Below, piece by piece: positions 6,897 through 35,998 of a stretch of 64,000 nt of DNA. The stretch is taken from the sequence record MN871444.1; one strand, written 5' to 3'. Position numbers and translations under genes: made by a program. The notes beneath the pieces are model-generated. The model was not told the DNA's origin and ran no database searches. It worked only from the letters and a program-made list of their open reading frames with translations. Every line of letters starts with the position of its first letter. Position 1 is the stretch's first letter.

Positions 6897-7334
6897 CTAT
6901 TCTATTTTGCCCAGGTCGGTATTTGGGAACAGAATTGAAATGGATTGTGGGTGAATATAGTTGATGTGTAAAATGCCCGTTCCATAAAAGACCGGGTGTT
7001 TCGAACCCAGAGAATATTTTAGATCAAAACCATCATCAGTTACGACCAATTGTCCAGATACAAAATTATCTGGAATGAAAGCCACCCGCAGGTGGGAACT
7101 TAATATCTGCGATATATCTTGCAGCGTGCTTGATGCACTTAATTGGGTAACATCACCGTTAACAGTCATGGTGGTGTTGTCCCATACTTTTAGGAAACGG
7201 GATAATTTTAGTTTACCTCTGGATTTATCAATGAGGTCTCCTACTGATATATTGACCCCGAAGAAAATGACCAGAAGCGTTAATACAATCACGGCGATAG
7301 ACAGCGCCGTCACTGCAAGGCTTACATCAATCAT
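6897..7334 (-). CDS. membrane-anchored paralogue of 6333..6851
   Basis: N-terminal TM helix; FYGTG and PNTDLG motifs shared with the neighbour. Confidence 0.6.
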   Translation of the reverse strand: MIDVSLAVTALSIAVIVLTLLVIFFGVNISVGDLIDKSRGKLKLSRFLKVWDNTTMTVNGDVTQLSASSTLQDISQILSSHLRVAFIPDNFVSGQLVVTDDGFDLKYSLGSKHPVFYGTGILHINYIHPQSISILFPNTDLGKIE

Positions 7335-9476: not shown

Positions 9477-9517
9477 TGAAAATCATCAAATAAAATAATT
9501 ATAAGCCTATATAACTT
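9477..9517 (+). promoter_or_regulatory. early (vRNAP-type) promoter
   Basis: AAAATAATTATAAGCC-TATATAAC, near-duplicate of 2786..2826. Confidence 0.75.
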
Positions 9518-9564
9518 AGGTGAATAAGGACCACTAGACCATCTGACATTACGGAGTAATTGAC

Positions 9565-10050
9565 ATGAGCATGATCGATTTTTTACTTGAGCAAAATTAT
9601 CAAGTTACAGTTACTAAAGACCGCGTGGTATTAAAAACACCCGATGGCAAAAATAAAACCATCAATCATAACGGGGACTACGATTCAGCTATTCGTGAAT
9701 GGCTATCTACCCAAGAAGTCATGGGTCCGGAAATCGCAGCAATCGTCGACCATGTAAAGCACATGTTAGAAGATGGAGGACATTCCTCGAGCGCCACATT
9801 CGAATATAAAGAGGCATTATGCCTAGTCAACATACCGACTACCCATAAACCGCGAGCTGTGGAAGACGGTATTAAAATTACCGTACAAACAAACATGCGG
9901 GTGTTAGACGACACCACGTATGAACCACGTCTTGAGGAAATTATCTCGGCGATAAGTAACACGGCCTGCGATTATACCTGCGTGATTAACAAATTGCCTA
10001 CCGTCGTAGGTGGTACGTATCGTTTCGAATGCATTTTTAAGAAAAACTAA
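9565..10050 (+). CDS. hypothetical protein, shared N-terminal module (copy 1)
   Basis: GGAG SD; LLEQNYQVT...KTPDG..KT...GDYDSAI. Confidence 0.75.
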   Translation: MSMIDFLLEQNYQVTVTKDRVVLKTPDGKNKTINHNGDYDSAIREWLSTQEVMGPEIAAIVDHVKHMLEDGGHSSSATFEYKEALCLVNIPTTHKPRAVEDGIKITVQTNMRVLDDTTYEPRLEEIISAISNTACDYTCVINKLPTVVGGTYRFECIFKKN

Positions 10051-10726: not shown

Positions 10727-11224
10727 ATGAACAATCAATTATTTAATCAGCTTCTTAATCGCGGATACCGCATTACTTTTACGAGCAGTCAGGTCATGTA
10801 CACGACCCCCGAAGGAGTTTCCAAAACACTCCAATATGCTGGGGACCCGGATGACACGCTACAGGCAATCTCTAACGGGTTGGAAAATAAAATCCCCGAT
10901 GAGGCAACACTGGGGCTTTGGAATCAGATTGTGGGTAACTTTAAAAACCCGTGGGCGGCGGTTCTTCAACTTACCTGTCCATTGGATGGTGGTCTGGTCA
11001 AAGTAGGTCCGATTCAGCCGCTATCACAAATAAAAGATTTGAGTATTGTTTTTGAAAATGTCAGTAACGTTCGAACTCATGGCGACGCACTGATTCAACA
11101 GTTACAATTAAATGGCATTCAAACCGCCTGGGTATTGCATGCCCAATACCCGACACTGTTAGCAATGACTAGTGGGTTTTGCCCAACCGGTAATTCATCC
11201 GGCATGCCGTTTGGCGTATATTAA
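10727..11224 (+). CDS. hypothetical protein, shared N-terminal module (copy 3)
   Basis: NQLLNRGYRIT...TTPEGVSKT...GDPDDTL. Confidence 0.75.
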   Translation: MNNQLFNQLLNRGYRITFTSSQVMYTTPEGVSKTLQYAGDPDDTLQAISNGLENKIPDEATLGLWNQIVGNFKNPWAAVLQLTCPLDGGLVKVGPIQPLSQIKDLSIVFENVSNVRTHGDALIQQLQLNGIQTAWVLHAQYPTLLAMTSGFCPTGNSSGMPFGVY

Positions 11225-13672: not shown

Positions 13673-14188
13673 ATGCACCAATTCGTATTAGTGGGTGGGC
13701 AGTGGGTGCCCGTCAGGTCAGACGCCATGCAAGCTATGAATGATGCCTGTTCGACAGCGGGGCAAGTACTCAGAACGGATACGTCAGCGACGCCAGTTAA
13801 ATTTTCCGGTGGGTTCATCGTCAACGAACTAAGTATCGTGGTTAATTCGACAGAATTGGCGGCACAGCAGACGGTTAACGCAGCGTCAGATTTAATTTCT
13901 CCGGTCATTAACATTCAAACGAACAGTGTTTATAAGTATAACACTACCACCTCAACCTGGGCCATCGACGCCACTGACTCTATCGCCAATTACCTGTCCC
14001 CAGGACTACACTACCATAATGACACCACAGGTCGGTTGTTTTTTGCTTTGGATAATACTTCCCTGGTGTATATTGGTAACCGGGGCGTCGCAGCTGCGAC
14101 GGATGCTGAAGCCATCGCCGGTACCCGAACGGATGTCGCCATCACTTCCACCCAAGCAAAACTGGCTTGGACTACCTGGGGGGTATAA
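13673..14188 (+). CDS. fibre/decoration-like paralogue 1
   Basis: VYKY..STW, PG.HY and a C-terminal ATDAEAIAGT repeat. Confidence 0.7.
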   Translation: MHQFVLVGGQWVPVRSDAMQAMNDACSTAGQVLRTDTSATPVKFSGGFIVNELSIVVNSTELAAQQTVNAASDLISPVINIQTNSVYKYNTTTSTWAIDATDSIANYLSPGLHYHNDTTGRLFFALDNTSLVYIGNRGVAAATDAEAIAGTRTDVAITSTQAKLAWTTWGV

Positions 14189-14193
14189 TACTC

Positions 14194-14697
14194 ATGCCTG
14201 TTTATAAATCGATTAAATATGGCTCTTCGTTTATTTCGGTCAGTTCGGATACGCTCGCGCCACTAAATGCGTTGTATGCGACCAGAACATACGGGCTATT
14301 GTTTAAAGATAATAGTTTGTCTTTTCTGCAATATACCCCAGAACGGTTGTACAATACCGCACCCTACGTGGTTGATACGGCATCTGAATTGAGTGCGGTC
14401 CAAGCTGCGGCAACCACAGGTTATATTGTCAACATGAACACCGCAGAAGTATACACCTATAGTGGTGGGAGTTGGACAATATCGACCGATAACACGTTGT
14501 ATTTGTCTCTGATTAAGCCTGGGCGGTTATATCGCAATACCGTGACTAAATTCACGTTCTATGCGAATGCTAACCAAACTCTGTTTAAAATGTTGGGCGT
14601 CGATCGAGGGATGGCGTCACAGACAGACGTAACTAACGGTACTGGCACCCAATGGGTATCACCACTAACATTGGCCAACGCACACAGGAGCTGGTAA
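14194..14697 (+). CDS. fibre/decoration-like paralogue 2
   Basis: VYTYSGGSW, IKPGRLY, ASQTDVTNGT..VSPLTL. Confidence 0.7.
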   Translation: MPVYKSIKYGSSFISVSSDTLAPLNALYATRTYGLLFKDNSLSFLQYTPERLYNTAPYVVDTASELSAVQAAATTGYIVNMNTAEVYTYSGGSWTISTDNTLYLSLIKPGRLYRNTVTKFTFYANANQTLFKMLGVDRGMASQTDVTNGTGTQWVSPLTLANAHRSW

Positions 14698-14700
14698 GTC

Positions 14701-15186
14701 ATGGCTGAGATTAATGAATTCGTTAAGTATGGTAGTGGTCGCCAGCAAGTTATTTCTCCGGATACTTCGGGTCTGAATGCTTTGGCCACGACCAATCATT
14801 CTGCGGTTATCACGGGAACCAGTTCTGTTACCCCAATAGCGCTCACCGATATTGCTGACGACCTGCTTATTGTCCCCGCTTCTGGGGTTACAGCAGCTCA
14901 ATCTGGAAATGAAGACTTCGTGGATGCCGACAACCTTTTACTCTACGTTTATGCCAGTTCTGGTTGGAGTACGGTTGCATTGCCTACGGCGTCCATTCGT
15001 CCGGGGAAACATTTCTATAGCACCACATCGAAAAATATCTACTACTATGACCCTGCAACTGCTGGCATGGTTTTGATTGCCTCTATGACTCCGGAGTTTG
15101 CGACAACTACGGATATCACTGCAGGCAGCGCAGGTAATTTACTCATTTCCCCTTACCTGTTGCGTTATGCGTACGACCATCGTTAA
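14701..15186 (+). CDS. fibre/decoration-like paralogue 3
   Basis: LYVYASSGW, IRPGKHFY, ATTTDITAGS..ISPYLL. Confidence 0.7.
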   Translation: MAEINEFVKYGSGRQQVISPDTSGLNALATTNHSAVITGTSSVTPIALTDIADDLLIVPASGVTAAQSGNEDFVDADNLLLYVYASSGWSTVALPTASIRPGKHFYSTTSKNIYYYDPATAGMVLIASMTPEFATTTDITAGSAGNLLISPYLLRYAYDHR

Positions 15187-16550: not shown

Positions 16551-17393
16551 CTATCGTTGGGTACCCATGAAATTACGAATGTGTTTGACATGTGCAGACT
16601 GGGATTGCATCATGGCAACTTTGTACCAGGTATTTTTCAGGTAATCTTTGTAATTTTGGTTAGCGTCACTATAACCTTCAATAACGCTTTTAAAGATACC
16701 AAAATCAAAACCACCGACGATTTCACCTTCGTTAAGTTTAACGATAAGGTGTTTATAGATAAACGCTTTAGTCGCATATTCGACCAGTTGCGCAAACTCG
16801 CCATACACCGCAGGTCGAAGGGTGGACAATTCGTCATCGTAAGACAACCAGCAGAATAGCCAACACCGGTCAGGGATACGTACCTGGTCTTCTACCAGCA
16901 CGGTATTCACGTTTACCAGAGATACGCGCGCAGTCCCGACAATCGGCATGTTTGCATAAGCGTTCCACAATGCAGCACCGGTCACCAACACCCCGGCATT
17001 ACCGGACCCTTTCTGTTGCATTTGGTCAAACCACGGGTTATAGTTAGAATACGCGATGGAATAACCATAGCCGTAGGATACCGATTCTGGAGAAATGATT
17101 TGGCGCCCTTGGAGGTATTCTGACGGGATGATGTACAAACTGCTACGCTCGTCAGGGATTTCTCGCGGAATGTTTGTAAGGTTGATTAAGGCCCTTTCAG
17201 AGTACTTTAAGTTAATGTCTCGCATCACCCTGGAGCGAATCACTTTAGTCTCAATGAAGTGATCGATGTCTGGGACGACGTGAGAAAACAATCGGACATT
17301 ATCCAGGAAAGCACGCTCCAGGATTTCCTCGGGGATGTCTGAATTATGTAAGCTATTTAAGGCGTAGCTAATCGCCGACGAAGTGGCTGGCAT
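16551..17393 (-). CDS. conserved jumbo-phage protein divergent from phuZ (possibly structural)
   Basis: 280 aa, AGGAGG SD; position and sequence style typical of phiKZ-like core genes. Confidence 0.75.
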   Translation of the reverse strand: MPATSSAISYALNSLHNSDIPEEILERAFLDNVRLFSHVVPDIDHFIETKVIRSRVMRDINLKYSERALINLTNIPREIPDERSSLYIIPSEYLQGRQIISPESVSYGYGYSIAYSNYNPWFDQMQQKGSGNAGVLVTGAALWNAYANMPIVGTARVSLVNVNTVLVEDQVRIPDRCWLFCWLSYDDELSTLRPAVYGEFAQLVEYATKAFIYKHLIVKLNEGEIVGGFDFGIFKSVIEGYSDANQNYKDYLKNTWYKVAMMQSQSAHVKHIRNFMGTQR

Positions 17394-17486: not shown

Positions 17487-18458
17487 ATGACTGAACGCAC
17501 TCTTTCCTTGTATGGCGCCGGCGGCGCTGGTAGTAACCAGGTAAAACCGTTTATTGGTGTAAGCACCCTACCGGGTTACGCCAAAATGGCCTGTACTCTT
17601 ATCGACACCAGTGATAGCAATATCACCGATGGCGTACCGGAAGAAAACGTATTTATCCTGGACGGCGTGGATGGCTCCGGTAAAGTTCGCGCCCAGAACT
17701 ACGAAGTTATTCTCAACACCACGCGGCAGATTCTCCTGCAACATCCTTTTGGTGACGTTGCAGTTATCGTATTCTCCGCAAGCGGCGGCTCCGGCTCAGT
17801 ATTCGCGCCAATCATCATGCAGGAAGCAATTGCTAAGGGCATTCCTATCATCGGTATTGTTATTGGCACTCACGGTACCGCTAAAGAAGCAGAGAACACG
17901 GTTAATACGCTGAAATCCATGGACAACATGGCGCGTAAAAACGGCGTACCTTTCGTAATCATTTACGAACGCAATCGCCGCGATTACGGTCGCAAAAAAG
18001 TAGATGAAGCAATCCGTGCGGCCATCCTGCAAATTTCATTGCTGGTTGGCACCATGAACAATAACTCCGGCCTGGATAGCGCCGATATTAAAAACTGGGT
18101 TTATTTCCAGTCGGTGACTGATGTTCCGGCACAGCTTGCCTTGCTGGACATTATCCTTAACGAAGACAGTGCCAAAGATATCAGCGATCCTATTTCGGTA
18201 GCCAGCATCTACGATGAAGGTCACGATGCTGAATTCCCGTTTGCCTCGGATTACGGCTGCGAAGGCTTTAAAGCCAGCGGGATTGCCCCGGAACACAAAG
18301 AAGTTCATTTCGTGATTTCTATCAGCGACGTCCCTCAACTGTTCGGTATGGAAAAAGAACAAGTTGACCGCTACCGTGAAGTTAAAAACTCCAGGGTGGT
18401 TCAATCATCGCTCACGGATAAGAACGATAAAACCACCGATGACGGCATGGTTCTTTAA
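17487..18458 (+). CDS. phuZ: tubulin-like spindle protein PhuZ
   Basis: GAGGAGSN, IDTS, tubulin signature ASGGSGS, C-terminal DDGMVL tail. Confidence 0.95.
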   Translation: MTERTLSLYGAGGAGSNQVKPFIGVSTLPGYAKMACTLIDTSDSNITDGVPEENVFILDGVDGSGKVRAQNYEVILNTTRQILLQHPFGDVAVIVFSASGGSGSVFAPIIMQEAIAKGIPIIGIVIGTHGTAKEAENTVNTLKSMDNMARKNGVPFVIIYERNRRDYGRKKVDEAIRAAILQISLLVGTMNNNSGLDSADIKNWVYFQSVTDVPAQLALLDIILNEDSAKDISDPISVASIYDEGHDAEFPFASDYGCEGFKASGIAPEHKEVHFVISISDVPQLFGMEKEQVDRYREVKNSRVVQSSLTDKNDKTTDDGMVL

Positions 18459-18475
18459 AACGCAATATAAACCAC

Positions 18476-18510
18476 AGGGAGAGGCGTTTAGCCTCTCCCT
18501 TTTATGTTGT
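18476..18510 (+). terminator. hairpin + TATGTTGT tail
   Basis: AGGGAGAGGC-GTTTA-GCCTCTCCCT-TT-TATGTTGT. Confidence 0.8.
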
Positions 18511-18599: not shown

Positions 18600-18616
18600 T
18601 TTACATTTATATTACT
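18600..18616 (+). promoter_or_regulatory. early-type promoter (TATATTAC)
   Basis: exact TATATTAC at 18608-18615 in an AT-rich intergenic region. Confidence 0.6.
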
Positions 18617-18652: not shown

Positions 18653-19048
18653 ATGTACATAAATGATAACAGAAGTTATCGGGCAGTTTATTTGTTTGAC
18701 GTTAGCGAATCATTGCGGGACTTGGATGATATCATCGCCACCAACTTTCAAATGCCTGATGACAGGATGCGCGGACAAATCATAATTTTGGGTATTGTCC
18801 AAGCAATGAAGCAATGGGGTTTGCCTGGTCTGAAAATAAATCCATCAACCTATATTCAAGGAGAGGAATGGTTCCATTGGGAAGCCCTTGGCGAATCCAT
18901 CATTGATTTACTAAACGACATGTCTCTTTATTTTCGAACTCGACATGGCCAGACACTGTATCGGTATTGTTCTTCCATCCCGACTTTAGAAATCGATGAT
19001 ATTATTCTGGATGAAGGAAACATCTTCTTCTGCTTTGAGGCAATATAA
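18653..19048 (+). CDS. acidic alpha/beta paralogue-array member 1
   Basis: GGAG SD; N-terminal strand VYLFDV, C-terminal hairpin IDDIILDEGNIFFCF. Confidence 0.7.
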   Translation: MYINDNRSYRAVYLFDVSESLRDLDDIIATNFQMPDDRMRGQIIILGIVQAMKQWGLPGLKINPSTYIQGEEWFHWEALGESIIDLLNDMSLYFRTRHGQTLYRYCSSIPTLEIDDIILDEGNIFFCFEAI

Positions 19049-19611
19049 TGGAAAACACCAACGTATTACTCGCAACAGGCGTGGTTGCCGATAACATCCG
19101 ATATCAATCAGAGCTTTTATTCCAACCAGTAGGGCTGGCACCGCTGACTCAACAAGAAGCCATCGCTATCGTGCACCGGATGATGGGTGAACTCATCGAA
19201 GTTACGCAGGCGTGGAGTCGTCGTCAGATGATATCGTGGCCCACCATTTTAGAAGTTTGTCGACCTGAGTTATTACATACGCATTTGGAAATCCTCTGGC
19301 CAACCAACTGGACGCCAACAAATGAAGACGATGAGCCTCCATACTGCCCCCTGGCCGATGTATTTGTTTCGGAGATACTGGGAAGCGCAGTGAATGTGCT
19401 GGACCATCGTATCCTGCGAGCTATTGTGCGGGACACAAAAAGCTGGGATGTATTTACATTAATTCCGATTGGCGATACTGGTGACCTCATCTTAAAAAAT
19501 GAGGGGGATTACCGCATCATGGACTGGATGCAACGATATCAAAATATTGAAGACGAAAAAGCTCGTAGAGAGGCATTGGCCTGGAGTAAACGTAATGGGT
19601 ATGGACTATGA
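19048..19611 (+). CDS. conserved hypothetical protein (array member 2)
   Basis: 1-nt overlap; WDVFT..DLILKNEGDYRI.DW C-terminus. Confidence 0.75.
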   Translation: MENTNVLLATGVVADNIRYQSELLFQPVGLAPLTQQEAIAIVHRMMGELIEVTQAWSRRQMISWPTILEVCRPELLHTHLEILWPTNWTPTNEDDEPPYCPLADVFVSEILGSAVNVLDHRILRAIVRDTKSWDVFTLIPIGDTGDLILKNEGDYRIMDWMQRYQNIEDEKARREALAWSKRNGYGL

Positions 19612-20056
19612 AGAGTTTGGGGAGTTACTGGATAAACTAACTGGGCCTTCCGTTGACCCAGAGCCGGAGCCACCGAAACCAGCATCAGTTTGTTTGTCAT
19701 TTGAAGACGTCATTGAATATGCCAATTTAGAGTTGGAGCGCATCAATGACGTAGCGGCCATCGCATTTAATGCTCAATCAATGTTGTTGCCCATTCTAAC
19801 CGAAGTATTTTATCCGGAAAAAACACGGATGGCTGGAAGAATGCGGACGATTACTGAACTTGAGCATTATGGTCTTCCGACTCTAGTCGCTGAATCGTTT
19901 TATAATGACTGCCGCGATCGGGTTTTAAATAAAGTATTGATGTATTACCCGGATGGAGTACATCAAGTCAATACTGGATTTTCGTTCATGTCGCCTATGG
20001 ATGTTTTATTTATGCCGGTAAGATTATCGGAGGTAAAGCATGGTCGTTGGGGATAA
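19595..20056 (+). CDS. array member 3
   Basis: GGAG SD before ATG 19595; overlapping genes. Confidence 0.65.
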   Translation: MGMDYEEFGELLDKLTGPSVDPEPEPPKPASVCLSFEDVIEYANLELERINDVAAIAFNAQSMLLPILTEVFYPEKTRMAGRMRTITELEHYGLPTLVAESFYNDCRDRVLNKVLMYYPDGVHQVNTGFSFMSPMDVLFMPVRLSEVKHGRWG

Positions 20057-20522
20057 ACCGCATTGTTGGATCACGACAGTACAGCCCACGGACGGGCTGT
20101 TTGACTATCACTGTTTACTCGCACTTACGGGCTTCGCCATCGGTTCTACGGAACTCATGGCTGAAGCCCTGCGTTATGCCCTGGCCATGGTGAATCCATT
20201 GGAAGATGAGCCGGTAGACGCAGAAGCGCTTTGGGAAAATATAGTCGAGTATATTCGTGAGCTTTCGCCTGAGGTACTGGAACAATACCTCTATCTGCGT
20301 CGTTGTAGCTGGTTTGATTTTGTACAATTAGAAGCAGATGCCATTACGCGGGCAGTGGTCGCCGTCGCACAGGAGTACAGCGAAATTATTAGGCCCATGA
20401 TTGACTGTGGGGTGATTCCAAGAAGCATCACTGATATCATCGTTATTGCTGATACTGCGTACATTTATTATTACCCAGAGGTAACGTCTAGGGAAACTAA
20501 CCATCGGATACTTACGCCATGA
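20040..20522 (+). CDS. array member 4
   Basis: GGAGG SD; C-terminal ITDIIVIADTAYIYY. Confidence 0.75.
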   Translation: MVVGDKPHCWITTVQPTDGLFDYHCLLALTGFAIGSTELMAEALRYALAMVNPLEDEPVDAEALWENIVEYIRELSPEVLEQYLYLRRCSWFDFVQLEADAITRAVVAVAQEYSEIIRPMIDCGVIPRSITDIIVIADTAYIYYYPEVTSRETNHRILTP

Positions 20523-20887
20523 GGCCAAATACTGTTATCTTAAATCCCATTTTTATCCCAGGCGTGGTGCCCCACCTGTTACGTGATTCCAGGATTTATG
20601 TTCAGGAGCTATTCAGTGTGGTGAATATGTCCGAACAACAACATCAGTGTTGGGACCAGTGGGAATCGGTAAACCAAGCCATCGATGAACAATATCCGGA
20701 TTTAGATTACGACATAATCGGAGACATCACCAATGAAGTCATTAAAGGTGCAATAAATGAATTCGACCAGCTGAAATCCATAATGCGTGATTTGGAACAA
20801 AAAGAAGGCGGGTATTGTGATTTCGTTGTTATGGTGGTCGACCCCACCTGTATTGCGGTGGAGGTAACCATGTATGCGCCGTTTTAA
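20519..20887 (+). CDS. array member 5
   Basis: ATGA overlap; TVILN strand, EQYPDL motif. Confidence 0.75.
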   Translation: MRPNTVILNPIFIPGVVPHLLRDSRIYVQELFSVVNMSEQQHQCWDQWESVNQAIDEQYPDLDYDIIGDITNEVIKGAINEFDQLKSIMRDLEQKEGGYCDFVVMVVDPTCIAVEVTMYAPF

Positions 20888-21233
20888 TATTGTTTATCCG
20901 TCGACATTGGGGCTTTTGGACTATTACCCCAATATCGGTTCTAAAACGGCCTTCATTAATTTGATATTTTGGATTATTCAAGACCTCACATTAGAAACTC
21001 CCGAAGCCTTGGACAAACAAGACATCGTGGATATTCTAGAGTGGGATTACCCTGATTTACCCCCACATCAAATTGAGGTGTTGGCCCAATGTATTCAACA
21101 TACTGTTTTGCTTTTTTGGAATCGTTATCGTCCTTGGTTTGTTGAAATAGGAAGGATTCATCGTGATAGCATCGTCCGACTCAATGAAGTTAATCGCCAC
21201 GCCACCATTTTCTCAGTCACCCCGATACACTAG
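20874..21233 (+). CDS. array member 6
   Basis: GGAGG SD; WDYPDL motif, C-terminal NRHATIFSV. Confidence 0.75.
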   Translation: MRRFNIVYPSTLGLLDYYPNIGSKTAFINLIFWIIQDLTLETPEALDKQDIVDILEWDYPDLPPHQIEVLAQCIQHTVLLFWNRYRPWFVEIGRIHRDSIVRLNEVNRHATIFSVTPIH

Positions 21234-21591
21234 AGTAATTATCGATACTCCGGCAGAAATGGTGTTTGATTGTCCAAATGGGGTTGCTTTTGACAAATTC
21301 ATCGATACGGTATTGGTGATCATTCAACTCGCCAAAAGTAAGTACGTGCTGGCGGCGCATCCAGAAAAAATTACAGCGCTTATTCTTAAGATATATCCTG
21401 AATTCGGTAATCATTATTGTGAAATGATCAGTAAAAGAGTATTGGCCGCAGCCACGGTGCACTACCACACCCTTAAACCAATACTGCCCACCGATATAAA
21501 TCTGGACACGATATATCGCGTCGCAGCCATGGATAAACATGCTACGGTATTGGTGCCAAGAGGAATTCAAAATGATTACTTACGTCTTTGA
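21163..21591 (+). CDS. array member 7 (start uncertain)
   Basis: GTG with AGGAAGG SD; KIYPEF motif, C-terminal DKHATVLV. Confidence 0.65.
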   Translation: MIASSDSMKLIATPPFSQSPRYTRVIIDTPAEMVFDCPNGVAFDKFIDTVLVIIQLAKSKYVLAAHPEKITALILKIYPEFGNHYCEMISKRVLAAATVHYHTLKPILPTDINLDTIYRVAAMDKHATVLVPRGIQNDYLRL

Positions 21592-22018
21592 ACTATATCC
21601 GTTTGTCGAGGCTAATCCCGATGTCGCCATTGGGGTATACCCTTATCATGTTTTTCTCCGGGATGTGATCTGGCTATGTCAAGAACCAGAGATGAAAGCA
21701 TCTTCGGAGCTATACCAATCTATATTCGATGTAATGGAAATCGTCGATCCCACTGTTTCAGTGTCAAAAGTAGGGGATGTCCTAAGATGCATATGTCAGA
21801 CAGCAGAGAAATTAAAACCATGGCTAAGCCCCACACTAAAAACATTCGGGAGCGAACCAATTCCGCTATCGCGACTCGAGGTGGTATCGGTATCGGTAAC
21901 CGGGGGGGTAATACTACAACTGCGGAATACGGATGGATCATCTTATCCGTTGGAGAAAAGATGGCCATTCTGCGAGGAATCCTCAACCTCCCGGCCTTGT
22001 ATTTCGACGATGCCTTAA
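21572..22018 (+). CDS. array member 8
   Basis: GAGGA SD; YVFEL strand, LEVVSVSVTGGVILQL hairpin. Confidence 0.7.
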   Translation: MITYVFELYPFVEANPDVAIGVYPYHVFLRDVIWLCQEPEMKASSELYQSIFDVMEIVDPTVSVSKVGDVLRCICQTAEKLKPWLSPTLKTFGSEPIPLSRLEVVSVSVTGGVILQLRNTDGSSYPLEKRWPFCEESSTSRPCISTMP

Positions 22019-22362
22019 CCTTAACCTGTACGGGTTGGGAAAATTACTATGTGCAACACCGCCAGGAAACAAAACAGTTTCTCTTTTATGACGTGGAAGA
22101 ATTATTGTCTGCCGCGATAGAAGAGTGCTTCGTAGACCAGGCGGAATACGACACAAGTAGTGCTGCCTTTAATACAATAAGTCAGGTGCAATTCATCACG
22201 GATCATCTGTATGATGCAATGCAGTTACTCGATGATACACTTACCACTAATCTTAGCGATCGCCTGGATGATCAACACCAGATTGGTCTTGTGCGAACGG
22301 TTGGCGAAGATTTAGCCATAAGGATAGACCGTGTTTGCTACTTTGACAAAAACAGAAAATAA
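21961..22362 (+). CDS. array member 9
   Basis: GGAG SD before ATG 21961; IGLVRTVGEDLAIRI hairpin. Confidence 0.7.
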   Translation: MAILRGILNLPALYFDDALTLTCTGWENYYVQHRQETKQFLFYDVEELLSAAIEECFVDQAEYDTSSAAFNTISQVQFITDHLYDAMQLLDDTLTTNLSDRLDDQHQIGLVRTVGEDLAIRIDRVCYFDKNRK

Positions 22363-22681
22363 ATGGTTAATCATAGACCTCTGTGGACTTATCCAGGAGG
22401 TCGCGGATAGAGTACAACGTTTTAAGATAGACCCGGATAAGCTTATATCAATCGCTGTGTTTCACCTTAACTCACGAGAAAGCCCGATTGTGGTAGACCC
22501 CGTGTTTGAAGACATGGATGATGAAGTGCTCACCAACAATGATGCATGGGATTTGGTTGAGCGGCAAATAGCATTGTTAACCCAAGAACTAGAAGTTCGG
22601 GTATCATCCGATATTTCTAATATAATGCAATATGAGTACTTGGAAGATGGCCTAGCCTTAAAGTACTGCTGCGAGAATTGA
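22331..22681 (+). CDS. array member 10
   Basis: GTG with AAGGA SD; LIIDL strand, YEYLEDGLALKY hairpin. Confidence 0.7.
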   Translation: MFATLTKTENKWLIIDLCGLIQEVADRVQRFKIDPDKLISIAVFHLNSRESPIVVDPVFEDMDDEVLTNNDAWDLVERQIALLTQELEVRVSSDISNIMQYEYLEDGLALKYCCEN

Positions 22682-23055
22682 TTATGACTACATATGTCGT
22701 CGATGAAACATCTTCTCGAGATGTTATTGAGAAAACAATGGCATTGTTGTTTGACCCCGACGAATGCCTAGCGTGGGAACATATTAACTTGGCAATAAAA
22801 ACAGCCAATAATGTCATCCGTGCTTTTTTTACTGACCCCGGCGACATATTGAGCGTAGTTAAAGGGGCTGTCGGCATCTACGATGAGAGTGATGATTGGT
22901 TGACTGAAGACCATCCTCAGTTTATCGAATTGATAGAGGCCTGCGATGAACTAGTCATGGCGGTTGATGTACTGGTGGATGACCTACAACTACCTAGCCG
23001 TATCAGCAAAGTCAAAATTGGTGATAATGAAGGCATGGTACTCATTATTGTTTGA
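22678..23055 (+). CDS. array member 11
   Basis: overlap with the upstream stop; YVVDE strand, ISKVKIGDNEGMVLII hairpin. Confidence 0.7.
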   Translation: MIMTTYVVDETSSRDVIEKTMALLFDPDECLAWEHINLAIKTANNVIRAFFTDPGDILSVVKGAVGIYDESDDWLTEDHPQFIELIEACDELVMAVDVLVDDLQLPSRISKVKIGDNEGMVLIIV

Positions 23056-23085: not shown

Positions 23086-23514
23086 ATGCCACAAATTCTT
23101 AATAAAATGGACATTGGCGATACCGTCACCTTCGACGTTTATCCCGCTGCCATTCTAGGCACGCAGTTTAAAAACTGCACTATCTTAGCAATCCTCGACT
23201 ACGATACCGTTAAGTTGATGAACATCGACCCTGACGCCATGCATGCGAAAGTGGTCGGGTATCTTCCAGCGGCACAAAAACAGGGTAGCTGGGCTAAAGC
23301 TACCGGTTACCCTTGGATTCGTATTCGTTTAGCGAATGGCACGGTAACTGCTATCGGGCAAACCTGGATTAATGCCGACACTATCGTAATCAACGAATCA
23401 CTAACCATCACGCTGGTCTTAACAGACGCCAATCAAACGGATATTGATAAGCTCTCGGTTATGATGTCGGCTAACGGCTACGACGCCACCAAGTATTCGA
23501 TTACCAGTAGTTAA
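23086..23514 (+). CDS. conserved jumbo-phage protein (possible SH3-like fold)
   Basis: GGAG SD; IGDTVTFDVYP..ILG N-terminus; directly upstream of the DNA polymerase as in phiKZ-like phages. Confidence 0.75.
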   Translation: MPQILNKMDIGDTVTFDVYPAAILGTQFKNCTILAILDYDTVKLMNIDPDAMHAKVVGYLPAAQKQGSWAKATGYPWIRIRLANGTVTAIGQTWINADTIVINESLTITLVLTDANQTDIDKLSVMMSANGYDATKYSITSS

Positions 23515-23602: not shown

Positions 23603-23628
23603 GCCTCTCCTTCGGGAGAGGCTTTTTT
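23603..23628 (+). terminator. canonical intrinsic terminator
   Basis: GCCTCTCC-TTCG-GGAGAGGC + T8. Confidence 0.9.
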
Positions 23629-23698: not shown

Positions 23699-25933
23699 AT
23701 GCGCTCGCCATTCCTTTATCCTGAAGACGCGGATTACAAACGCGATTTTGCTATTTTTGGCAGGTATATTAAAGACGCTGCCTTTTTACTGCACAAGCAA
23801 ACGGGGTACGACTTAGAGTACTGTACGGATTGGGTACGTAAATCAATCAACAAGGGTGGGAAGCACGAAGCAAAAAACCCCAAAGCGTTCATACTCAATT
23901 CCGAAAATAATGGTAATCGCAAACGCCAGGTGACGACGGTTACCGAATACATTGCAAATATTGTTAAGAACAATAAAATTGTTGCGCCGTCAATGACGGT
24001 GTATTCGCACCCGAAACAGAAAAAATCATTACTTGCTGAATTTATTTTGCATAAACTGGACATGCGTAAGAAAGCCAAAAAGGAAATGTTCCTGGCTGAA
24101 AAACAAATGAACGAAGCAAATAGGCTTGTAAAAGAAGCAACCGCGAACAATGATACCACGATGGCTTCGCAACAAGCGATTGTAGCGGCAACGATGTCCA
24201 CAGAAAAAGCGTATTTCAACTGTTTACAGACATCAGCAAAAATTGCAGCAAACAGTTTATCTGGAACCTTTGGTTTTGCTGGGACCGTGTTGTTTAATAA
24301 GACTGCCCACTCGTCACTAACTTCCATTTGTCGGTGTGCGGCAAGTAATGCCAATGCGAACAATGAACGGTTCCTATCGGGTAACCGGCATTACTGGTCT
24401 CTGGAAGTCACGTTAAATAACATCGTTAATATCCTGACGACGGTAGATTGTAATCGGGTTCGCGAAATCGTAGAGCGCTATGGTTTAGTTTATCCTACAG
24501 TCGAACAAGTGGTTGAAGCTATTAGGGGATGTACTGATTATTACTGGAGTAAAAGCAGTCCTGCGTTATTTCAAAAAGTGGTGAATCTCGTACAGACGCT
24601 GACCCCAGAAGAACGCGCAGGCTACCTCTATAATCAAGACGCTTACCACGTGATGAAATGCAACGACGGTTTCTTTAGGACGTTGGTTGCTAAGATGATT
24701 ACCATCCCTGATGAATTACCTGACGATCCTAAATATTGGATGGATCTCATGGATGAAGATATTCTTATGTTTGCATCGCGGCTGTGTAGCCCATTTATGT
24801 CGGGTAAATCAGTAAAGGATTTAGAGAACGCTTATAATGAAGGAAAAAATAAAGATTATCTGCGCTTCGTTGCCGTCGTCAAAAATGTATTGGTGAACTT
24901 GCAGGATTACGCCGATTTCATTCAAACCTTCTGGGCCACGTCGAACCCACCTATGAGTTTGGCTATGATTCCGACCATGATGCGGCGATGTGCGGTATTG
25001 TCGGATACAGATTCTACTATTTTCACTACTCAGGATTGGACTACCTGGTACCAAGGCAAATTGGATTTCACGTATGAATCAGAATCCGTTTCCGCCTTGA
25101 TGGTTTATTTTACTAGCTGTATGACCACTCATTTATTGGCCATGCATTCATCCCAGATGGGTGTGGACCGTGAGCAGCTGTATACGCTGGCCATGAAATC
25201 AGAATTTGCTAACCCGTTATTAGGTCTCACCACCCGAGGCAAACACTATTACTCTTACGTCAGTGCCAAAGAAGGTAACGTCTATAGCGAATATGTTTTG
25301 GATATCAAAGGAGTGGGGTTACGTAACTCGAAACTACCACCTAACATCCGGGAATCTAGCGATGCACTTATTCGACATGTCATGGACACCATCATGAAAG
25401 GTGAAAAACTATCTGTTCATGAAATACTTACTAGAGTAGCCGATGAAGAACGTGAAATTATTCGTTCCATACATGCCGGTGAACCTACATACCTGTCGGT
25501 AGCAAAGATTAATACCGCCGATGCGTATAAACAAAAAGAGATGAACCCGACCTACCAGTTATACGGATTATGGGAACAGGTATTTGCACCCAAATATGGA
25601 CATGCTCCATTACCGCCATTTGATTGCGTGGCCGTGAACATTGACGCCAGCAATAAAACGGATATGGCCGCTTGGTTGAATGGTTCCGGGGATGAACAAT
25701 TTGCCCAACGATTTAGAAACTGGTTAGACGCAACGGGTAAAGATAAAATAACGCGCATTTTACTGCCTACCGAAATACTGAGAGTACATGGGTTACCTAA
25801 AGAAATTATTAATGCGTTAGATTTACGCAAAGTACTAATGAATTTAATGGATGCACACTACCTGATTTTGGAATCATTGGGTATCTTTATTCGCAACCAG
25901 CGCATTTCCCACCTCGTCTCTGATACTTATTGA
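23699..25933 (+). CDS. family-B DNA polymerase, C-terminal (fingers/palm/thumb) subunit, phiKZ gp50-like
   Basis: motif B KIAANSLSGTFG; motif C LSDTDSTIF; KHYY and KGVG palm/thumb motifs. Confidence 0.9.
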   Translation: MRSPFLYPEDADYKRDFAIFGRYIKDAAFLLHKQTGYDLEYCTDWVRKSINKGGKHEAKNPKAFILNSENNGNRKRQVTTVTEYIANIVKNNKIVAPSMTVYSHPKQKKSLLAEFILHKLDMRKKAKKEMFLAEKQMNEANRLVKEATANNDTTMASQQAIVAATMSTEKAYFNCLQTSAKIAANSLSGTFGFAGTVLFNKTAHSSLTSICRCAASNANANNERFLSGNRHYWSLEVTLNNIVNILTTVDCNRVREIVERYGLVYPTVEQVVEAIRGCTDYYWSKSSPALFQKVVNLVQTLTPEERAGYLYNQDAYHVMKCNDGFFRTLVAKMITIPDELPDDPKYWMDLMDEDILMFASRLCSPFMSGKSVKDLENAYNEGKNKDYLRFVAVVKNVLVNLQDYADFIQTFWATSNPPMSLAMIPTMMRRCAVLSDTDSTIFTTQDWTTWYQGKLDFTYESESVSALMVYFTSCMTTHLLAMHSSQMGVDREQLYTLAMKSEFANPLLGLTTRGKHYYSYVSAKEGNVYSEYVLDIKGVGLRNSKLPPNIRESSDALIRHVMDTIMKGEKLSVHEILTRVADEEREIIRSIHAGEPTYLSVAKINTADAYKQKEMNPTYQLYGLWEQVFAPKYGHAPLPPFDCVAVNIDASNKTDMAAWLNGSGDEQFAQRFRNWLDATGKDKITRILLPTEILRVHGLPKEIINALDLRKVLMNLMDAHYLILESLGIFIRNQRISHLVSDTY

Positions 25934-27296: not shown

Positions 27297-27318
27297 TAAA
27301 CGTATATTACTTAGGTGA
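27297..27318 (+). promoter_or_regulatory. early-type promoter 2 upstream of chmA
   Basis: TATATTAC-TTAGGTGA, same downstream context as the 9477 promoter. Confidence 0.7.
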
Positions 27319-27439: not shown

Positions 27440-29326
27440 ATGGGTATTAATGACGCTCGCAATACTGGTAACAACGACGCAGCTCAAGAACGTGCGCAGT
27501 CTGCAGCTCCGCAGTTCGACGAATCTCAAGTACGCCAGGCAGCTCCGCATCGCAAAACCATTACCGGTAAAGGCGGTGTGAACGCACTCCTGTCCCGTCG
27601 CCTGAACCGCGTGGGCGGTAACGAAGACATCAGCAAAATCGCTGAAATGATGCGCAGCTATCTGCGCAGCCAGCTGGACGAAGGTTACGTTCCGACGTTC
27701 GTTATTGTCGATGGCGTGACTTACGAACTGGCGGTATCTGCAATCGTTCCGTCCGTGATGCTGACTGCTCGCGGTGTTAAAACGGTGCTGGCCTATCCGA
27801 TTCTGGTAGAGCCGCGCGACCGTTCCATGGACACTGTCCGTACCGTTCGTGAAGCTGGCCGTGAACTGTCACTGCCGGTAGTAACCTCCGATTTCTACGA
27901 CGCGCGTACCGAAGAGCAGATCCGTAACGCTATCGTTCGTCAGTTCGGTCTGAACGCAGCAGATAGCGATATCAAACTGGTCGGTTACTGCACCCTGCCG
28001 GTAGAAGTATCTTCCGACGACAAAGGCGAAATCGAAGACCTGGCCGCCAACGTATTCTCGGCGCTGGAATCCTGGGTTCGCGAACAACCGGGCTCCGAAG
28101 AGCCGCGTTTCAACCTGGCAGAAATCGACAACACCCAAACTCGCTTCACCGGCAAACTGGACTTCTCTCCGGCGCCGATCAAAACCCTGACCGGCCTGCC
28201 GGTGCGTAACGACGTGACCATCACCACCAAAATGCGTGATATCACGGTCGACAGCCTGCACAGCCAATCCGGCGTTCTGTCCGAACTGAGCGGTTACGTG
28301 GACCTGATCTACGTTGACCCGCAGCCCGAACAAAACCCGTACACCCGTCAGATGTATCTGAACCCGGCGTGCTATCTCCCGAACTTCGTGATTTCGCATC
28401 AGGAAATTCTGGTTAACGCCGTGACCCCTGAACTGGTCCTGTTCGGCCTGGCATCTGCACGTCTGATGCAACAGCCGAACAACGCATTCTACAATGCGTT
28501 CAAACCGCGCCATGGCGTCAAAAACGATACCCGTGATATCGGGGCTATCGGTTACGAGTTCGATCCGACTGGCGAAGGCAAAGGTCCGAAAGCGCCTATC
28601 GATACCGCAGATTCCACCTTCAACCTGCAGACTCTTCTGAGCACTGCATTCCGCCCGGGCCTGCTGTACAGCCTGGACGTGGTAGATGGCGGTGAGTATT
28701 CCTGGGTATACGAAGCGCTGCTGTACGCTGCTAACGGCGATGCCGCGGCAGAAAACGATGTGATTCAGTATGCAGATAACCTGACCAACGGTCATTTCCG
28801 TCAGCTGTGGAACCCGGTCGAAAACCGCGTTGCGGTAGACTCCGGCGACCTGATTCCGATCGGTTACTACATCGATCCGGAAGGCCAACGTAAAGACCTG
28901 CGCGATATCGACTATCTGGCACTGCTGAACATGTTCGGTGGCAGTGATGCGGAACTGGTTTACCGCTGGTCCGAAACCTTCGGTAACCCGAACCAATCTC
29001 CGCAGCAACGTCTGGATGCACGTGTACGTATCCTGAAATCGCTGCTGAGCAACAACCTGTTCATCAAACGTATCGCACATCGCATCACCCTGACCCCGAC
29101 CTTCATCGACGTGCTGGCCACTGCCATCTCCAAAGCGGGCATCACGATCGTTCCGGAAACGGTGTTCAGCGAACAGCAGACCTATACCCGTGGGTCTACC
29201 ACCCTGGCTAACTACGCTCTGACCGGCGGTCAGTCTCCGCTGTTTGCAGGTATGCAGCAGCAGACCGTTGCCGGTTACAACACCGTATACCAGCCGCGTG
29301 GCGCAGGCAGCCGTTTCGGCGGCTAA
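27440..29326 (+). CDS. chmA: chimallin, phage nuclear shell protein
   Basis: 628 aa; LLSRRL.R, G.PVRND.T, L..GYVDL.Y, LDV.DGGEYSW, IP.GYY....G..KDLRD.D motifs; directly upstream of nvRNAP beta'. Confidence 0.92.
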   Translation: MGINDARNTGNNDAAQERAQSAAPQFDESQVRQAAPHRKTITGKGGVNALLSRRLNRVGGNEDISKIAEMMRSYLRSQLDEGYVPTFVIVDGVTYELAVSAIVPSVMLTARGVKTVLAYPILVEPRDRSMDTVRTVREAGRELSLPVVTSDFYDARTEEQIRNAIVRQFGLNAADSDIKLVGYCTLPVEVSSDDKGEIEDLAANVFSALESWVREQPGSEEPRFNLAEIDNTQTRFTGKLDFSPAPIKTLTGLPVRNDVTITTKMRDITVDSLHSQSGVLSELSGYVDLIYVDPQPEQNPYTRQMYLNPACYLPNFVISHQEILVNAVTPELVLFGLASARLMQQPNNAFYNAFKPRHGVKNDTRDIGAIGYEFDPTGEGKGPKAPIDTADSTFNLQTLLSTAFRPGLLYSLDVVDGGEYSWVYEALLYAANGDAAAENDVIQYADNLTNGHFRQLWNPVENRVAVDSGDLIPIGYYIDPEGQRKDLRDIDYLALLNMFGGSDAELVYRWSETFGNPNQSPQQRLDARVRILKSLLSNNLFIKRIAHRITLTPTFIDVLATAISKAGITIVPETVFSEQQTYTRGSTTLANYALTGGQSPLFAGMQQQTVAGYNTVYQPRGAGSRFGG

Positions 29327-33201: not shown

Positions 33202-34315
33202 TACCACCATCGCTTCATTTCACGATGTCCATTTTGGGCACCCCAATACCCGCTATGACAACATCATTCGCGGAATGGAAAAAGATATTTGCGCCACCGA
33301 CCCGTTTATTCGCAATCTAACTTATTTGTTCTATCCTGGTGATGTTTTCGATCGGTTATTGATTCTACCTGAACAAGGAATCCCGGCTATTCGCCGGGAG
33401 TTCAGACGTCAGTTGGAAATATGTCAAGCTTACGGCATCTCTGTTCGTGTATTGGAAGGTACTCCATCTCACGATTGGCACCAGTCTAAGTTGATATTGA
33501 GTGTGGCCGAAGAAATGGGGTTTACTGGGGATTTAAAATACATAGATACTCTCTGTGTTGAAATAACCCCAAAAGGACACAGCATTTTATACATCCCCGA
33601 TGAATGGCGCACTGACCTCCAACAAACTTATTTGGAAGCACTGGAGGCCATTAAAGTCGCTGGATTGGAACAAGTGGATTATTGCTTATTTCATGGTCAA
33701 TTCACGCATCAGTTTCCACCAGAATGGCAGGTGGGATGCCATGATGCTGATGCTTGGCAGTCGTTAGTGAAGCATTATCTTTTTGCAGGGCATATCCACA
33801 CCCCATCCCAAAAAGGAAAAATTCTGGTGGCTGGGTCCTATGACCGGTTGCGCCACGGTGAAGAACACCCGAAGGGCCATTATCGGGTAACGGTTAAAAC
33901 TGATGGTGATGACATCATTGAGTTTGTTGAAAATAAAGAAGCTAAAATTTATTTGACCCTGGATGTCAGTGGTCAGAGCGTAGAATCTATTTACGGCTAC
34001 GTTGAATCAAAGATACGTGGATTGCCGGTTAATTCATTTATTAGACTAAGTGGTAATCGAGACCAAAGCTTAAGAATGGTCAAGAAAGCCCTTAGCGATA
34101 ATTATCCCGAATATAGATGGGATATTATATTTGAAAAAACAAAAAAACAGCCAAGGACAGTAAGTTTAGATTCTACACCAATACAGAAAACAACCGTAAC
34201 ACTCGGCGCCTTAGAAGATGCGATACTGTTGCGGCTAGAGCAGTCGGGCCTATCGCCCCAAGTGATAGACCACGCTAAACAACTTTATAAGGATAGCAAA
34301 CATGAGTTTGCGTGA
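33182..34315 (+). CDS. SbcD/Mre11-like metallophosphoesterase nuclease
   Basis: DVHFG, GDVFD, EGTPSHD, FHG, GHIH. Confidence 0.9.
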   Translation: MSTTNSDTTIASFHDVHFGHPNTRYDNIIRGMEKDICATDPFIRNLTYLFYPGDVFDRLLILPEQGIPAIRREFRRQLEICQAYGISVRVLEGTPSHDWHQSKLILSVAEEMGFTGDLKYIDTLCVEITPKGHSILYIPDEWRTDLQQTYLEALEAIKVAGLEQVDYCLFHGQFTHQFPPEWQVGCHDADAWQSLVKHYLFAGHIHTPSQKGKILVAGSYDRLRHGEEHPKGHYRVTVKTDGDDIIEFVENKEAKIYLTLDVSGQSVESIYGYVESKIRGLPVNSFIRLSGNRDQSLRMVKKALSDNYPEYRWDIIFEKTKKQPRTVSLDSTPIQKTTVTLGALEDAILLRLEQSGLSPQVIDHAKQLYKDSKHEFA

Positions 34316-35120
34316 TTTTTCTTTGCGGGAGATGGGGGCGATTCCCATCTCCATTGGGACGAGTTTGGCTATAGAGGCATTACGACAACCCAATGTACCG
34401 AACTACGACGCGCTCTGGGTAAATCTAAGAACCCTGTTTCGTAATTTGATGTCTTGCGTTCCTACCCACGTTCGTGATGATGCTAACGATCGTGAGACCG
34501 CGGAGGTACTCGAAGAAGAGATGGGGCATATTTCTGAGGCAGTATCCATCTTAAGTAATGGTACTAAACCGGTCAAGTGGTATATTACCAAACCGGAAAC
34601 CCTGAGTAAGATATTGCCCGACGCCATTATTCGAGCACCCAAGACCCCCTTGCAAAAATCTCAGGCAGCGTTATGTGACGCTGCCCTTGGTCGATTGCTG
34701 GCGAAGTACCAAAAAGAGATTCAAGTATTTTCACCGATTATGTATGGTCAGGGTAAAGCTATGGTGCTGACGCATTTCCCTGAAGATTTGCTGAGTCGCA
34801 AACATTTTGCCGAAATGTACCTGCTAGAATCCCATACCGGTAAAATAAAAGAACATGACGCGTTTAATACAAAACTAGGGGATATCGATCAATTCCCTAA
34901 ACTTCCATTCAATGGATTTACTTTAACAGTATTTGGTGATAAGCAAGTACTCATTTATCAAATGCCAAATAAAATCCGTACCATGGTATTGGAAGTTGCT
35001 AAGAAAGCAGGCTGGACGCCTATGACTACTAAGGACAGAATGTTATTAACCCTAAACAACATAAAGAATCAATACGACCGAGAAGTTCTCAAAAGCATTC
35101 TTATGAAATGCAAGTATTGA
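34302..35120 (+). CDS. conserved jumbo-phage protein (possible PIN/5'-nuclease-like fold)
   Basis: core synteny; DALWVNLRTLFRN and THFPEDLL motifs; fold is inference. Confidence 0.65.
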   Translation: MSLRDFSLREMGAIPISIGTSLAIEALRQPNVPNYDALWVNLRTLFRNLMSCVPTHVRDDANDRETAEVLEEEMGHISEAVSILSNGTKPVKWYITKPETLSKILPDAIIRAPKTPLQKSQAALCDAALGRLLAKYQKEIQVFSPIMYGQGKAMVLTHFPEDLLSRKHFAEMYLLESHTGKIKEHDAFNTKLGDIDQFPKLPFNGFTLTVFGDKQVLIYQMPNKIRTMVLEVAKKAGWTPMTTKDRMLLTLNNIKNQYDREVLKSILMKCKY

Positions 35121-35979: not shown

Positions 35980-35998
35980 CTTAAAAGCATATATTACT
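35980..35998 (+). promoter_or_regulatory. early-type promoter (TATATTAC)
   Basis: TTAAAAGCA-TATATTAC at 35990-35997. Confidence 0.65.

Follow-up and report, generated by a model that had tools for sequence, protein, structure and literature searches.

A tandem family of small proteins with a predicted new fold in a putative early operon of the jumbo phage KpGz_1 lies in the slot of the phiKZ import factors Imp2 and Imp4

How proteins are admitted to the phage nucleus is an open question, and the known adaptors, Imp2, Imp4, Imp5 and Imp7, look like orphans limited to Pseudomonas phages. Here, we asked what is encoded by a block of small genes at positions 18653-23055 of a 64,000-nucleotide (nt) stretch of phage KpGz_1 (sequence record MN871444.1; the whole stretch is referred to as the window). 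A preliminary description, made from the sequence of this stretch without database searches, had read the block as a tandem array of about 11 highly diverged acidic paralogues of one fold behind an early promoter, and had suggested nuclear-import adaptors or acidic DNA mimics among their possible roles. We find that the reading as eleven paralogues is about half right, in that the block is a mixed unit and not eleven copies of one gene. Its head (g01-g03) consists of old, conserved genes, its tail (g09-g11) is conserved only in the KpGz_1 lineage and two neighbouring clades, and between them lie five genes (g04-g08) that profile comparisons join into one tandemly duplicated, fast-diverging family for which neither Pfam nor PHROGs holds a model. 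This family lies in the interval that in phiKZ holds the genes for the cargo-specific import adaptors Imp2 and Imp4, which suggests a testable hypothesis for its function.

Based on its gene content, KpGz_1 is predicted to be a nucleus-forming jumbo phage (chimallivirus) that encodes chimallin, PhuZ and a homologue of Imp1/PicA (Table 1). The window is 100% identical to Serratia/Klebsiella phage KpGz_1, and its DNA shares ~82% identity with KpHz_2 and with Klebsiella phage vB_KvM-Eowyn (genus Eowynvirus; Eowyn in the following). As close relatives, we compared Eowyn, KpHz_2 and three metagenome contigs; a sister clade (loci L019-L021; polymerase 56-58% identical) and more distant clades were located by searching with the DNA polymerase, while a search of IMG/VR via PhuZ found no relatives. 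The same slot is present at the loci of the sister clade and of the distant clades, and in all chimalliviruses examined the gene order is phuZ, small genes, SH3DP gene, polymerase gene, a minus-strand gene, chimallin gene and genes for the non-virion RNA polymerase (nvRNAP).

The array is real and more than a chance arrangement. As had been described, it consists of consecutive overlapping genes: eleven plus-strand genes fill 18653-23055 exactly, and nine of the ten junctions between them overlap or abut, by 1-58 nt, with a GGAG-like ribosome-binding site in front of most starts. Its placement between phuZ and the DNA polymerase gene was also correctly recognized, except that a twelfth gene of the operon, g12, intervenes before the polymerase gene. 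The eleven genes correspond one-to-one to Eowyn gp074-gp084, every one of which is annotated as hypothetical, and all are present one-to-one and in the same order in the five close relatives (protein identity 68-99%). The ratio of nonsynonymous to synonymous substitution rates (dN/dS) is 0.01-0.24 across the array, indicating purifying selection throughout, and we therefore consider the eleven to be real coding genes. The fastest-evolving are g05-g08 (dN/dS 0.07-0.24), and the value for g04 is 0.10; for comparison, those of phuZ, g12 and the polymerase gene are 0.01-0.02. The acidity that had been noted holds as well, since the isoelectric point (pI) is below 5 in 9 of the 11 proteins and the median of 4.40 is lower than that of the 35 other small genes in the window (5.78; Mann-Whitney P = 7e-4). 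Scans of the array proteins against Pfam, PHROGs and PADLOC gave nothing above noise, and the array genes are not covered in the RAY core-genome paper, the Annual Review or the antisense-oligomer paper.

Orthology with the sister clade is clean at both ends of the array, with g01-g04 corresponding to s05, s06, s07 and s08, respectively, and g09-g12 to s14, s15, s16 and s17. The middle block differs, comprising four genes in KpGz_1 (g05-g08) versus five in the sister clade (s09-s13), with weak cross-matches. We note that the array is also a mosaic with respect to its closest relatives (window positions 18653-22681 compared with L001/L002/L007 and L003): g01-g04 are nearer to Eowyn and KpHz_2 (86-99% amino acid [aa] identity) than to contig L003 (74-89%), g05-g06, g08 and g10 are nearer to L003 (80-91%) than to Eowyn (68-79%), and g07 and g09 are about equally near to both. 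These mixed affinities argue for recombination within the array.

The array appears to be part of one transcription unit. Upstream, an intrinsic terminator closes the phuZ unit, and the next strong terminator comes after g12; the unit therefore comprises g01-g11 together with the SH3DP gene, running from TATATTAC at 18608 to the terminator at 23603 as a mixed set of genes. TATATTAC is located 38 nt before g01 and matches a promoter motif described for phiKZ (PMC7058600), one of a class of short A/T-rich motifs that precede early operons and are read by virion RNA polymerases (PMC7598289). The number of copies of TATATTAC in the 64-kb window is not significant (4 versus 2.7 expected). Their placement is: three of them lie between genes, at 31-130 nt ahead of g01, the chimallin gene and the gp68-like gene (P about 0.002). 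Moreover, the copy before the g01 orthologue is kept in four close relatives (L001, L002, L003 and L007) as well as in the sister-clade loci L019-L021, in which the polymerase is only 57% identical. These data support the proposal that an early promoter of this type heads the array, and that the same class precedes the genes for chimallin (TATATTAC at 27303) and an nvRNAP subunit (at 35990). The promoter class suggests that the operon is expressed early. Two further, near-identical promoter-like stretches in the window, at 2792-2836 (core TATATCAC at 2817) and 9483-9527 (core TATATAAC at 9508), each have the same 25-nt A/T-rich sequence in front of the core and are located 45-50 nt before runs of small plus-strand genes; they may be variants of the early promoter or constitute a second class of promoters.

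The family in the middle of the array became recognizable only at the level of profiles. Comparisons with single sequences or shallow profiles linked only g06-g07, g06-g08, g05-g07, g05-g10 and g05-g11, all weakly, and in an all-against-all comparison of 47 proteins the pairs with E <0.02 were all between neighbouring genes, including three other paralogue sets. A first round of profile-profile comparisons with close orthologues only gave signals that were too weak; the comparison became informative after the sister-clade loci were added. In the resulting two-clade hhalign network (136 comparisons; F and S profiles are numbered as the g and s genes), which connects the middle genes, the P values include those of S11-S13 (6e-7), F05-S12 (4e-6), S10-S12 (2e-5), F05-S11 (4e-5), F07-S11 (4e-4) and F06-F07 (1e-3). 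In every test, g06-g07 was the best pair. The most divergent member, g04, was recovered with the family profile by hmmsearch (E = 5e-4 in a database of 230) and by hhalign (78.5%, P = 1.7e-5), in an alignment that runs colinearly across the long helix, an x-P motif and the hairpin at the C terminus. Based on similarity at the level of profiles and hidden Markov models (HMMs), the family thus comprises g04-g08 and sister-clade s08-s13, i.e., five copies in KpGz_1 and six in the sister clade, and the joint profile also recruits one gene from the same slot of Xanthomonas phage RTH11 (E = 1e-3). Any two of g04-g08 share 11-22% identity. We regard it as very likely that the anatomy of the operon and the five-member family are both correct as given here.

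Thus, the proposal that one fold had been amplified across about 11 paralogues stands for g04-g08 (hhalign P values of 6e-7 to 1e-3, and 1.7e-5 for g04), and it fails for g02, a gp43 homologue (see below). All motif strings on which that proposal was built are present in the array DNA, and the four YPD/E-like motifs map to g05-g08, in which they align at an invariant Pro. One string, the putative first strand VIIDT, is encoded upstream of the annotated start of g07 and is part of the protein only if the longer open reading frame is used. In five genomes, the 32 codons that precede the start annotated in Eowyn contain no stop and encode a conserved protein sequence; this extension shares up to 71 nt with the end of g06, and a GTG at position 21163 is found in each of the five. 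We consider the longer g07 probably correct, because the conserved extension supplies the first strand that all other family members have.

Wider searches kept the family narrow. A word-index protein search with g06 gave just three close clusters, and an exhaustive HMMER search of 1.84 billion representatives with the g05-g08 profile found only the four subfamilies themselves and a single further protein, which we took as spurious. The latter (P0076; 5443 aa) matches positions 34-78 of the profile in 14 stretches (E = 8.6e-10), probably as a repeat or compositional artefact. The window contains other tandem or near-tandem sets of small paralogues, at 13673-14188, 14194-14697 and 14701-15186 (phmmer 4e-11 and 4e-8), at 9565-10050 and 10727-11224 (phmmer 7e-7), and, on the minus strand, at 6333-6851 and 6897-7334 (phmmer 2e-4). 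Like g04-g08, these are adjacent duplicated small reading frames, some of them behind related promoter-like motifs, but they are far less diverged (phmmer 4e-11 to 2e-4) and unrelated to g04-g08 (family HMM E > 0.6 in databases of 230 and 261).

To describe the fold, we used an AlphaFold2 model of g06 built from the g05-g08 alignment (predicted local distance difference test [pLDDT] score 83.6; predicted template modelling [TM] score 0.74). The model has a strand at residues 4-9, helices at 13-16, 24-36, 48-58 and 64-95, and a hairpin formed by 99-106 and 110-117. Accordingly, in the predicted family fold a first strand precedes a bundle of helices, and a hairpin at the C terminus completes a three-stranded sheet. 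We consider it a new small fold: in Foldseek searches of the PDB the model had no match (best E 0.45, TM-score at most 0.37), nor did the family profile match PDB sequences. In BFVD, the top match was its own Eowyn orthologue, and the Eowyn orthologues of g08 and g07 ranked 4 and 9 with TM-scores of 0.51-0.59 (0.51 for the g08 orthologue, gp081). The other matches were almost exclusively uncharacterised small proteins of jumbo phages, i.e., Desertfox, RisingSun, Joad, PhiEaH1, RP12, EL, Noxifer, Phabio, SL2, PS119XW, 201phi2-1 and PhiPA3. Entries A0A8E5NQ14, A0A7D3UCU4 and UPI001F1316E0 are among the BFVD matches. Three matches from Noxifer have the lengths of the slot genes gp037, gp040 and gp041, and one from 201phi2-1 has that of gp78, a correspondence in length only. 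A weak match at rank 40 was PhiPA3 gp044 ("protein 044"), the Imp2 homologue (E = 0.098, probability 0.60, query TM-score 0.41, target TM-score 0.32). The layout of strand, helices and hairpin that had been ascribed to most of the eleven proteins is thus supported by the model for g06 and by homology for g04-g08 only. Altogether, the predicted g04-g08 fold is restricted to chimalliviruses, has no solved relative, and has been expanded in tandem amid older conserved genes.

Two flanking genes place the family on the phiKZ map. The first is g02, the most conserved gene of the array (98-99% identical to Eowyn; dN/dS 0.01), whose hhalign alignment to the phiKZ gp43 family spans residues 30-148 of the latter (93%, P = 3.5e-7, 119 columns; reversed decoy P = 0.27); g02 also matches single homologues in four other phages. 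Based on this alignment, we identify g02 as homologous to the first ~150 residues of the gp43 family. Members of that family (PhiPA3 gp039, 201phi2-1 gp75 and Noxifer gp036) occupy the same position as g02, after phuZ and before a g03-like gene, but are 337-365 aa long versus 187 aa, and their C-terminal half is absent from g02. A split of gp43 into g01 and g02 was rejected, as g01 has no match to the remaining part (P = 0.41); nor does g03 match it (P = 0.052). Orthologues of g03 directly follow the gp43-like gene in pEa_SNUABM_54, Noxifer (gp037/038), Moabite, L023 and L024. Pfam searches with gp43, Imp2 and neighbouring proteins of PhiPA3, 201phi2-1 and Noxifer found nothing. In Serratia phage Moabite, hhalign matches gp030 (L015 6667-7146) to the C-terminal part of g02 and the gp43 family (69%, P = 4.6e-5); this gene is annotated as a "thymidylate kinase-like protein" from a weak HHpred match, and the alignment makes this label doubtful.

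The second flanking gene is g12, which matches PF20287 (E = 1.9e-29; 102 bits versus a cut-off of 25) and adjoins the polymerase gene in all chimalliviruses examined. The slot in phiKZ runs from gp39 (PhuZ) via gp43 to gp47, gp48, gp49 (SH3DP) and gp50 (polymerase), and the order in PhiPA3 (gp039...gp044-gp046-gp047) is the same as that in KpGz_1. Because g02 and g12 correspond to gp43 and gp49, g03-g11 lie where phiKZ has gp44-gp48, including the genes for Imp2 and Imp4. The products of these genes, orf47 (Imp2; PhiPA3 orf44) and orf48 (Imp4), are small, cargo-specific nuclear-import factors that work with Imp1 and have sequence homologues confined to Pseudomonas phages (Kokontis and colleagues; bioRxiv 10.1101/2024.03.27.586873). 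For phiKZ and PhiPA3, Imp2 is reported to be needed for a specific cargo to be imported and to enter the nucleus itself through Imp1. A later preprint terms Imp2 and Imp4 adaptors, and neither gene has transposon insertions in phiKZ (PMC12676376).

In the reading that we favor, the early operon would produce small acidic proteins of which at least g04-g08 act as cargo-specific nuclear-import adaptors. Each adaptor would bind one or a few client proteins in the cytoplasm and hand them over at the chimallin shell to the import factor Imp1/PicA, in the manner of Imp2 and Imp4 of phiKZ, and the range of imported clients would be broadened or readjusted as the genes duplicate and diverge. We assign this reading a probability of roughly 30 to 40%. 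The functional link consists of synteny and one weak structural match, that of g06 to PhiPA3 gp044. The array genes resemble Imp2 and Imp4 in their position between the gp43-like and SH3DP genes, in size (115-170 aa), in acidity (pI of Imp2 homologues, 4.4-4.75) and in having sequences restricted to a sub-lineage, and phiKZ, PhiPA3 and KpGz_1 alike encode an Imp1/PicA homologue. They differ from them in that g04-g08 are five tandem copies, whereas PhiPA3, 201phi2-1 and Noxifer each have one recognizable Imp2 homologue in the slot, and in that neither sequences nor profiles are detectably similar.

Several observations weigh against an adaptor role. The family profile compared with an alignment of Imp2 gave an hhalign P value of 0.29, and compared with the gene in the position of Imp4 one of 0.69, no better than reversed decoys; an hmmsearch of the family against Imp2 homologues indicated no homology (E = 0.18-0.97). 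We therefore do not file g04-g08 under the Imp2 family, and claim only that the two groups may work alike; the suggestion from the preliminary description that the array encodes import adaptors gains indirect support from the shared syntenic interval and from the weak match of g06 to PhiPA3 gp044. The structural match to PhiPA3 gp044, with its rank, probability and target TM-score, is marginal, and the assignment of BFVD matches to slot genes in Noxifer and 201phi2-1, made from lengths, is provisional. Position in a variable slot says little about function, many other roles of early genes would go with acidic products and an early promoter, and the exhaustive HMMER search yielded no relative beyond the clade from which an annotation could be taken.

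Some of the same evidence fits early host-takeover or anti-defence proteins, i.e., small acidic inhibitors of host enzymes or DNA mimics that would act before the nucleus closes, encoded by a paralogue block diversifying in an arms race with host defences. The early-class promoter and the strong acidity are as expected for such proteins, the middle block is the fastest-evolving part of the array and varies in copy number between clades, segments of the array have been exchanged mosaically among relatives, and homologues are lacking outside the lineage, as is typical for accessory counter-defence genes. However, neither Pfam nor PHROGs gave a match to an anti-restriction or other family, and the only defence match in PADLOC was a weak one of g04 to the ZorF/DUF2894 model (E = 0.033). 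Proteins of the Ocr/ArdA type are likewise small, strongly acidic, early phage proteins, but they are elongated mimics of DNA, whereas the predicted fold of g06 is a compact alpha/beta domain without a relative among solved structures, DNA mimics included. The earlier idea of acidic DNA mimics thus found no support beyond acidity. In addition, dN/dS is far below 1 throughout, and the slot with its run of genes is kept in every chimallivirus examined, beside core replication and shell genes, which suggests that the role of the genes is connected with the nucleus-based life cycle and not with particular hosts. Taken together, we consider an anti-defence role somewhat unlikely. The possibility that the Avs5 trigger JADA is encoded inside this block was considered and rejected, since JADA is phiKZ gp124.

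A separate question concerns ancestry. In the widest form of common descent, all small genes between phuZ and the polymerase gene of the Chimalliviridae would derive from one ancient fold that was also the source of Imp2, and would form an evolving panel of adaptors for Imp1/PicA. We regard this as unlikely; if it were true, Eowynvirus and the sister clade would hold an expanded panel of 5-6 recognizable copies, possibly nine or more, and import selectivity would evolve through tandem duplication of adaptors. Less probable still is the reading that all or nearly all of the eleven genes of the array are paralogues of one fold that have diverged past recognition in sequence, a proposal that is compatible with any of the functional readings. 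In addition to the acidity of 9 of the 11 proteins, the C termini of 10 of the 11 show, by eye, an amphipathic helix and then a hydrophobic pattern that resembles a hairpin. A model of g11, although poor (pLDDT 58.6), has its elements in the order of g06, with helices between a short first strand and a hairpin at the C terminus; in Foldseek, its sole match was its own orthologue. There are weak reciprocal signals between g05 and g11, which share short motifs (phmmer 0.012-0.016), between g05 and g10 (hhalign 6e-4) and between g10 and s16 (0.01). F03, F09, F10 and F11 align colinearly with the family (hhalign P 0.045-0.083; four of six reversed decoys, 0.36-0.67), and one Foldseek match of g06 is as long as the product of gp037, the g03-like gene of Noxifer.

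Against a single fold for the entire array, g02 is, by the alignment described above, homologous to a domain of the 340-aa gp43 family. In comparisons with the family profile, g01, g02, g03 and g09-g11 were never significant (hhalign P = 0.5-0.6 for g01, 0.013-0.069 for g03, 0.083-0.089 for g09, and 0.045-0.6 overall for g01, g03 and g09-g11), and their scores with the family HMM were not above those of composition-matched shuffles (P = 0.07). The mutual profile similarity that would be expected for eleven paralogues was hence found among g04-g08, while g01, g03 and g09-g11 score like shuffles. Iterating the profile with g04, RTH11_6408_6803, L023.09, L024.06 and L023.11 recruited no further array gene, and the Eowyn orthologues of g01-g05 and g09-g11 were not among the top 50 Foldseek matches of g06. 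Finally, each of g01-g04 and g09-g11 keeps a single orthologue from clade to clade, which is not so for the middle block.

It is similarly improbable that the genes encode accessory factors for replication or nucleus assembly, such as chaperones or scaffold subunits acting with SH3DP, the polymerase or the chimallin shell and not as cargo adaptors: they share an operon with SH3DP, a domain defined through association with phage DNA polymerases, all members of the family keep the same neighbourhood, from phuZ through the array, SH3DP and polymerase genes to the chimallin gene, g02 and g03 are conserved well beyond the KpGz_1 lineage, and phiKZ Imp2 itself enters the nucleus by import (bioRxiv 10.1101/2024.03.27.586873), but the sequence and copy number of the middle block vary too much for a core part of replication, and the block resembles no family of replication proteins.

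If g04-g08 and their structural relatives from this slot in other chimalliviruses are import adaptors, then adaptors would be a family-wide, duplicating class of genes and not a peculiarity of phiKZ, each nucleus-forming phage would have a defined list of candidate genes, and a block of "hypothetical" early genes in therapy-candidate Klebsiella and Serratia phages would gain an annotation. If they have another function, they would still represent a new small fold restricted to chimalliviruses and without a solved relative.

Table 1. Coordinates of the array genes, the predicted transcription signals and the hallmark genes in the window.
Feature	Position	Strand	Description
PhuZ	17487-18458		chimallivirus hallmark
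Intrinsic terminator	18476-18500	+	closes phuZ unit; stem of 10 pairs, 7 G-C, then T run
TATATTAC promoter core	18608-18615	+	putative phiKZ-type early (virion RNA polymerase) promoter; exact match; A-rich stretch upstream
g01	18653-19048	+	131 aa, pI 4.40; conserved orthologue (sister-clade s05)
g02	19048-19611	+	187 aa; most conserved array gene; homologue of the N-terminal domain of the phiKZ gp43 family
g03	19595-20056	+	153 aa; family following gp43 in distant relatives
g04	20040-20522	+	160 aa; most divergent family member
g05	20519-20887	+	122 aa; motif EQYPDL; hhalign F05-S12 3.7e-6, F05-S11 4.4e-5
g06	20874-21233	+	119 aa; modelled member
g07	21163-21591	+	starts GTG 21163 (142 aa), ATG 21184 (135 aa) or ATG 21259 (110 aa, Eowyn annotation)
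g08	21572-22018	+	148 aa; reciprocal HMM matches with g06; F08-S13 P = 0.005
g09	21961-22362	+	133 aa, pI 4.31; orthologues s14 (sister clade) and L022
g10	22331-22681	+	116 aa, GTG start; orthologues s15 and L022.03; links to g05 weak, not significant
g11	22678-23055	+	125 aa from TTG 22678 or 123 aa from ATG 22684; pI 4.05; orthologues s16 and L022.04
g12 (SH3DP protein)	23086-23514	+	142 aa; PF20287; phiKZ gp49 orthologue; last operon gene, outside the g04-g08 family
Intrinsic terminator	23603-23622	+	downstream operon boundary; stem of 8 pairs, 6 G-C, then T8
Divergent DNA polymerase	23699-25933		PF20286
Chimallin	27440-29326		chimallivirus hallmark
phiKZ gp68-like nvRNAP subunit	36028-37575		TATATTAC in front at 35990
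Imp1/PicA homologue	37602-39122		BLASTP 9e-32 to PhiPA3 gp063, 23% identity, full-length

Outside the array, a gene for a 272-aa protein at 34302-35120 had no match to PhiPA3 gp061 (ChmC/Imp6). In the sister clade, extra genes of variable size without a counterpart in the window are located between PhuZ and the array promoter (L019 1603-3950, L020 668-3928 and L021 1934-3366), encoding proteins of 514 and 242 aa, one fusion of 1086 aa, or proteins of 209 and 228 aa. On the other side of phuZ in KpGz_1, the minus-strand gene at 16551-17393 encodes a DUF7484 protein (PF24302), the orthologue of phiKZ gp42, and is located upstream of phuZ. In PhiPA3, 201phi2-1 and Noxifer, the DUF7484 gene lies within the slot of small genes, and this difference in position indicates that the slot has been rearranged around it.

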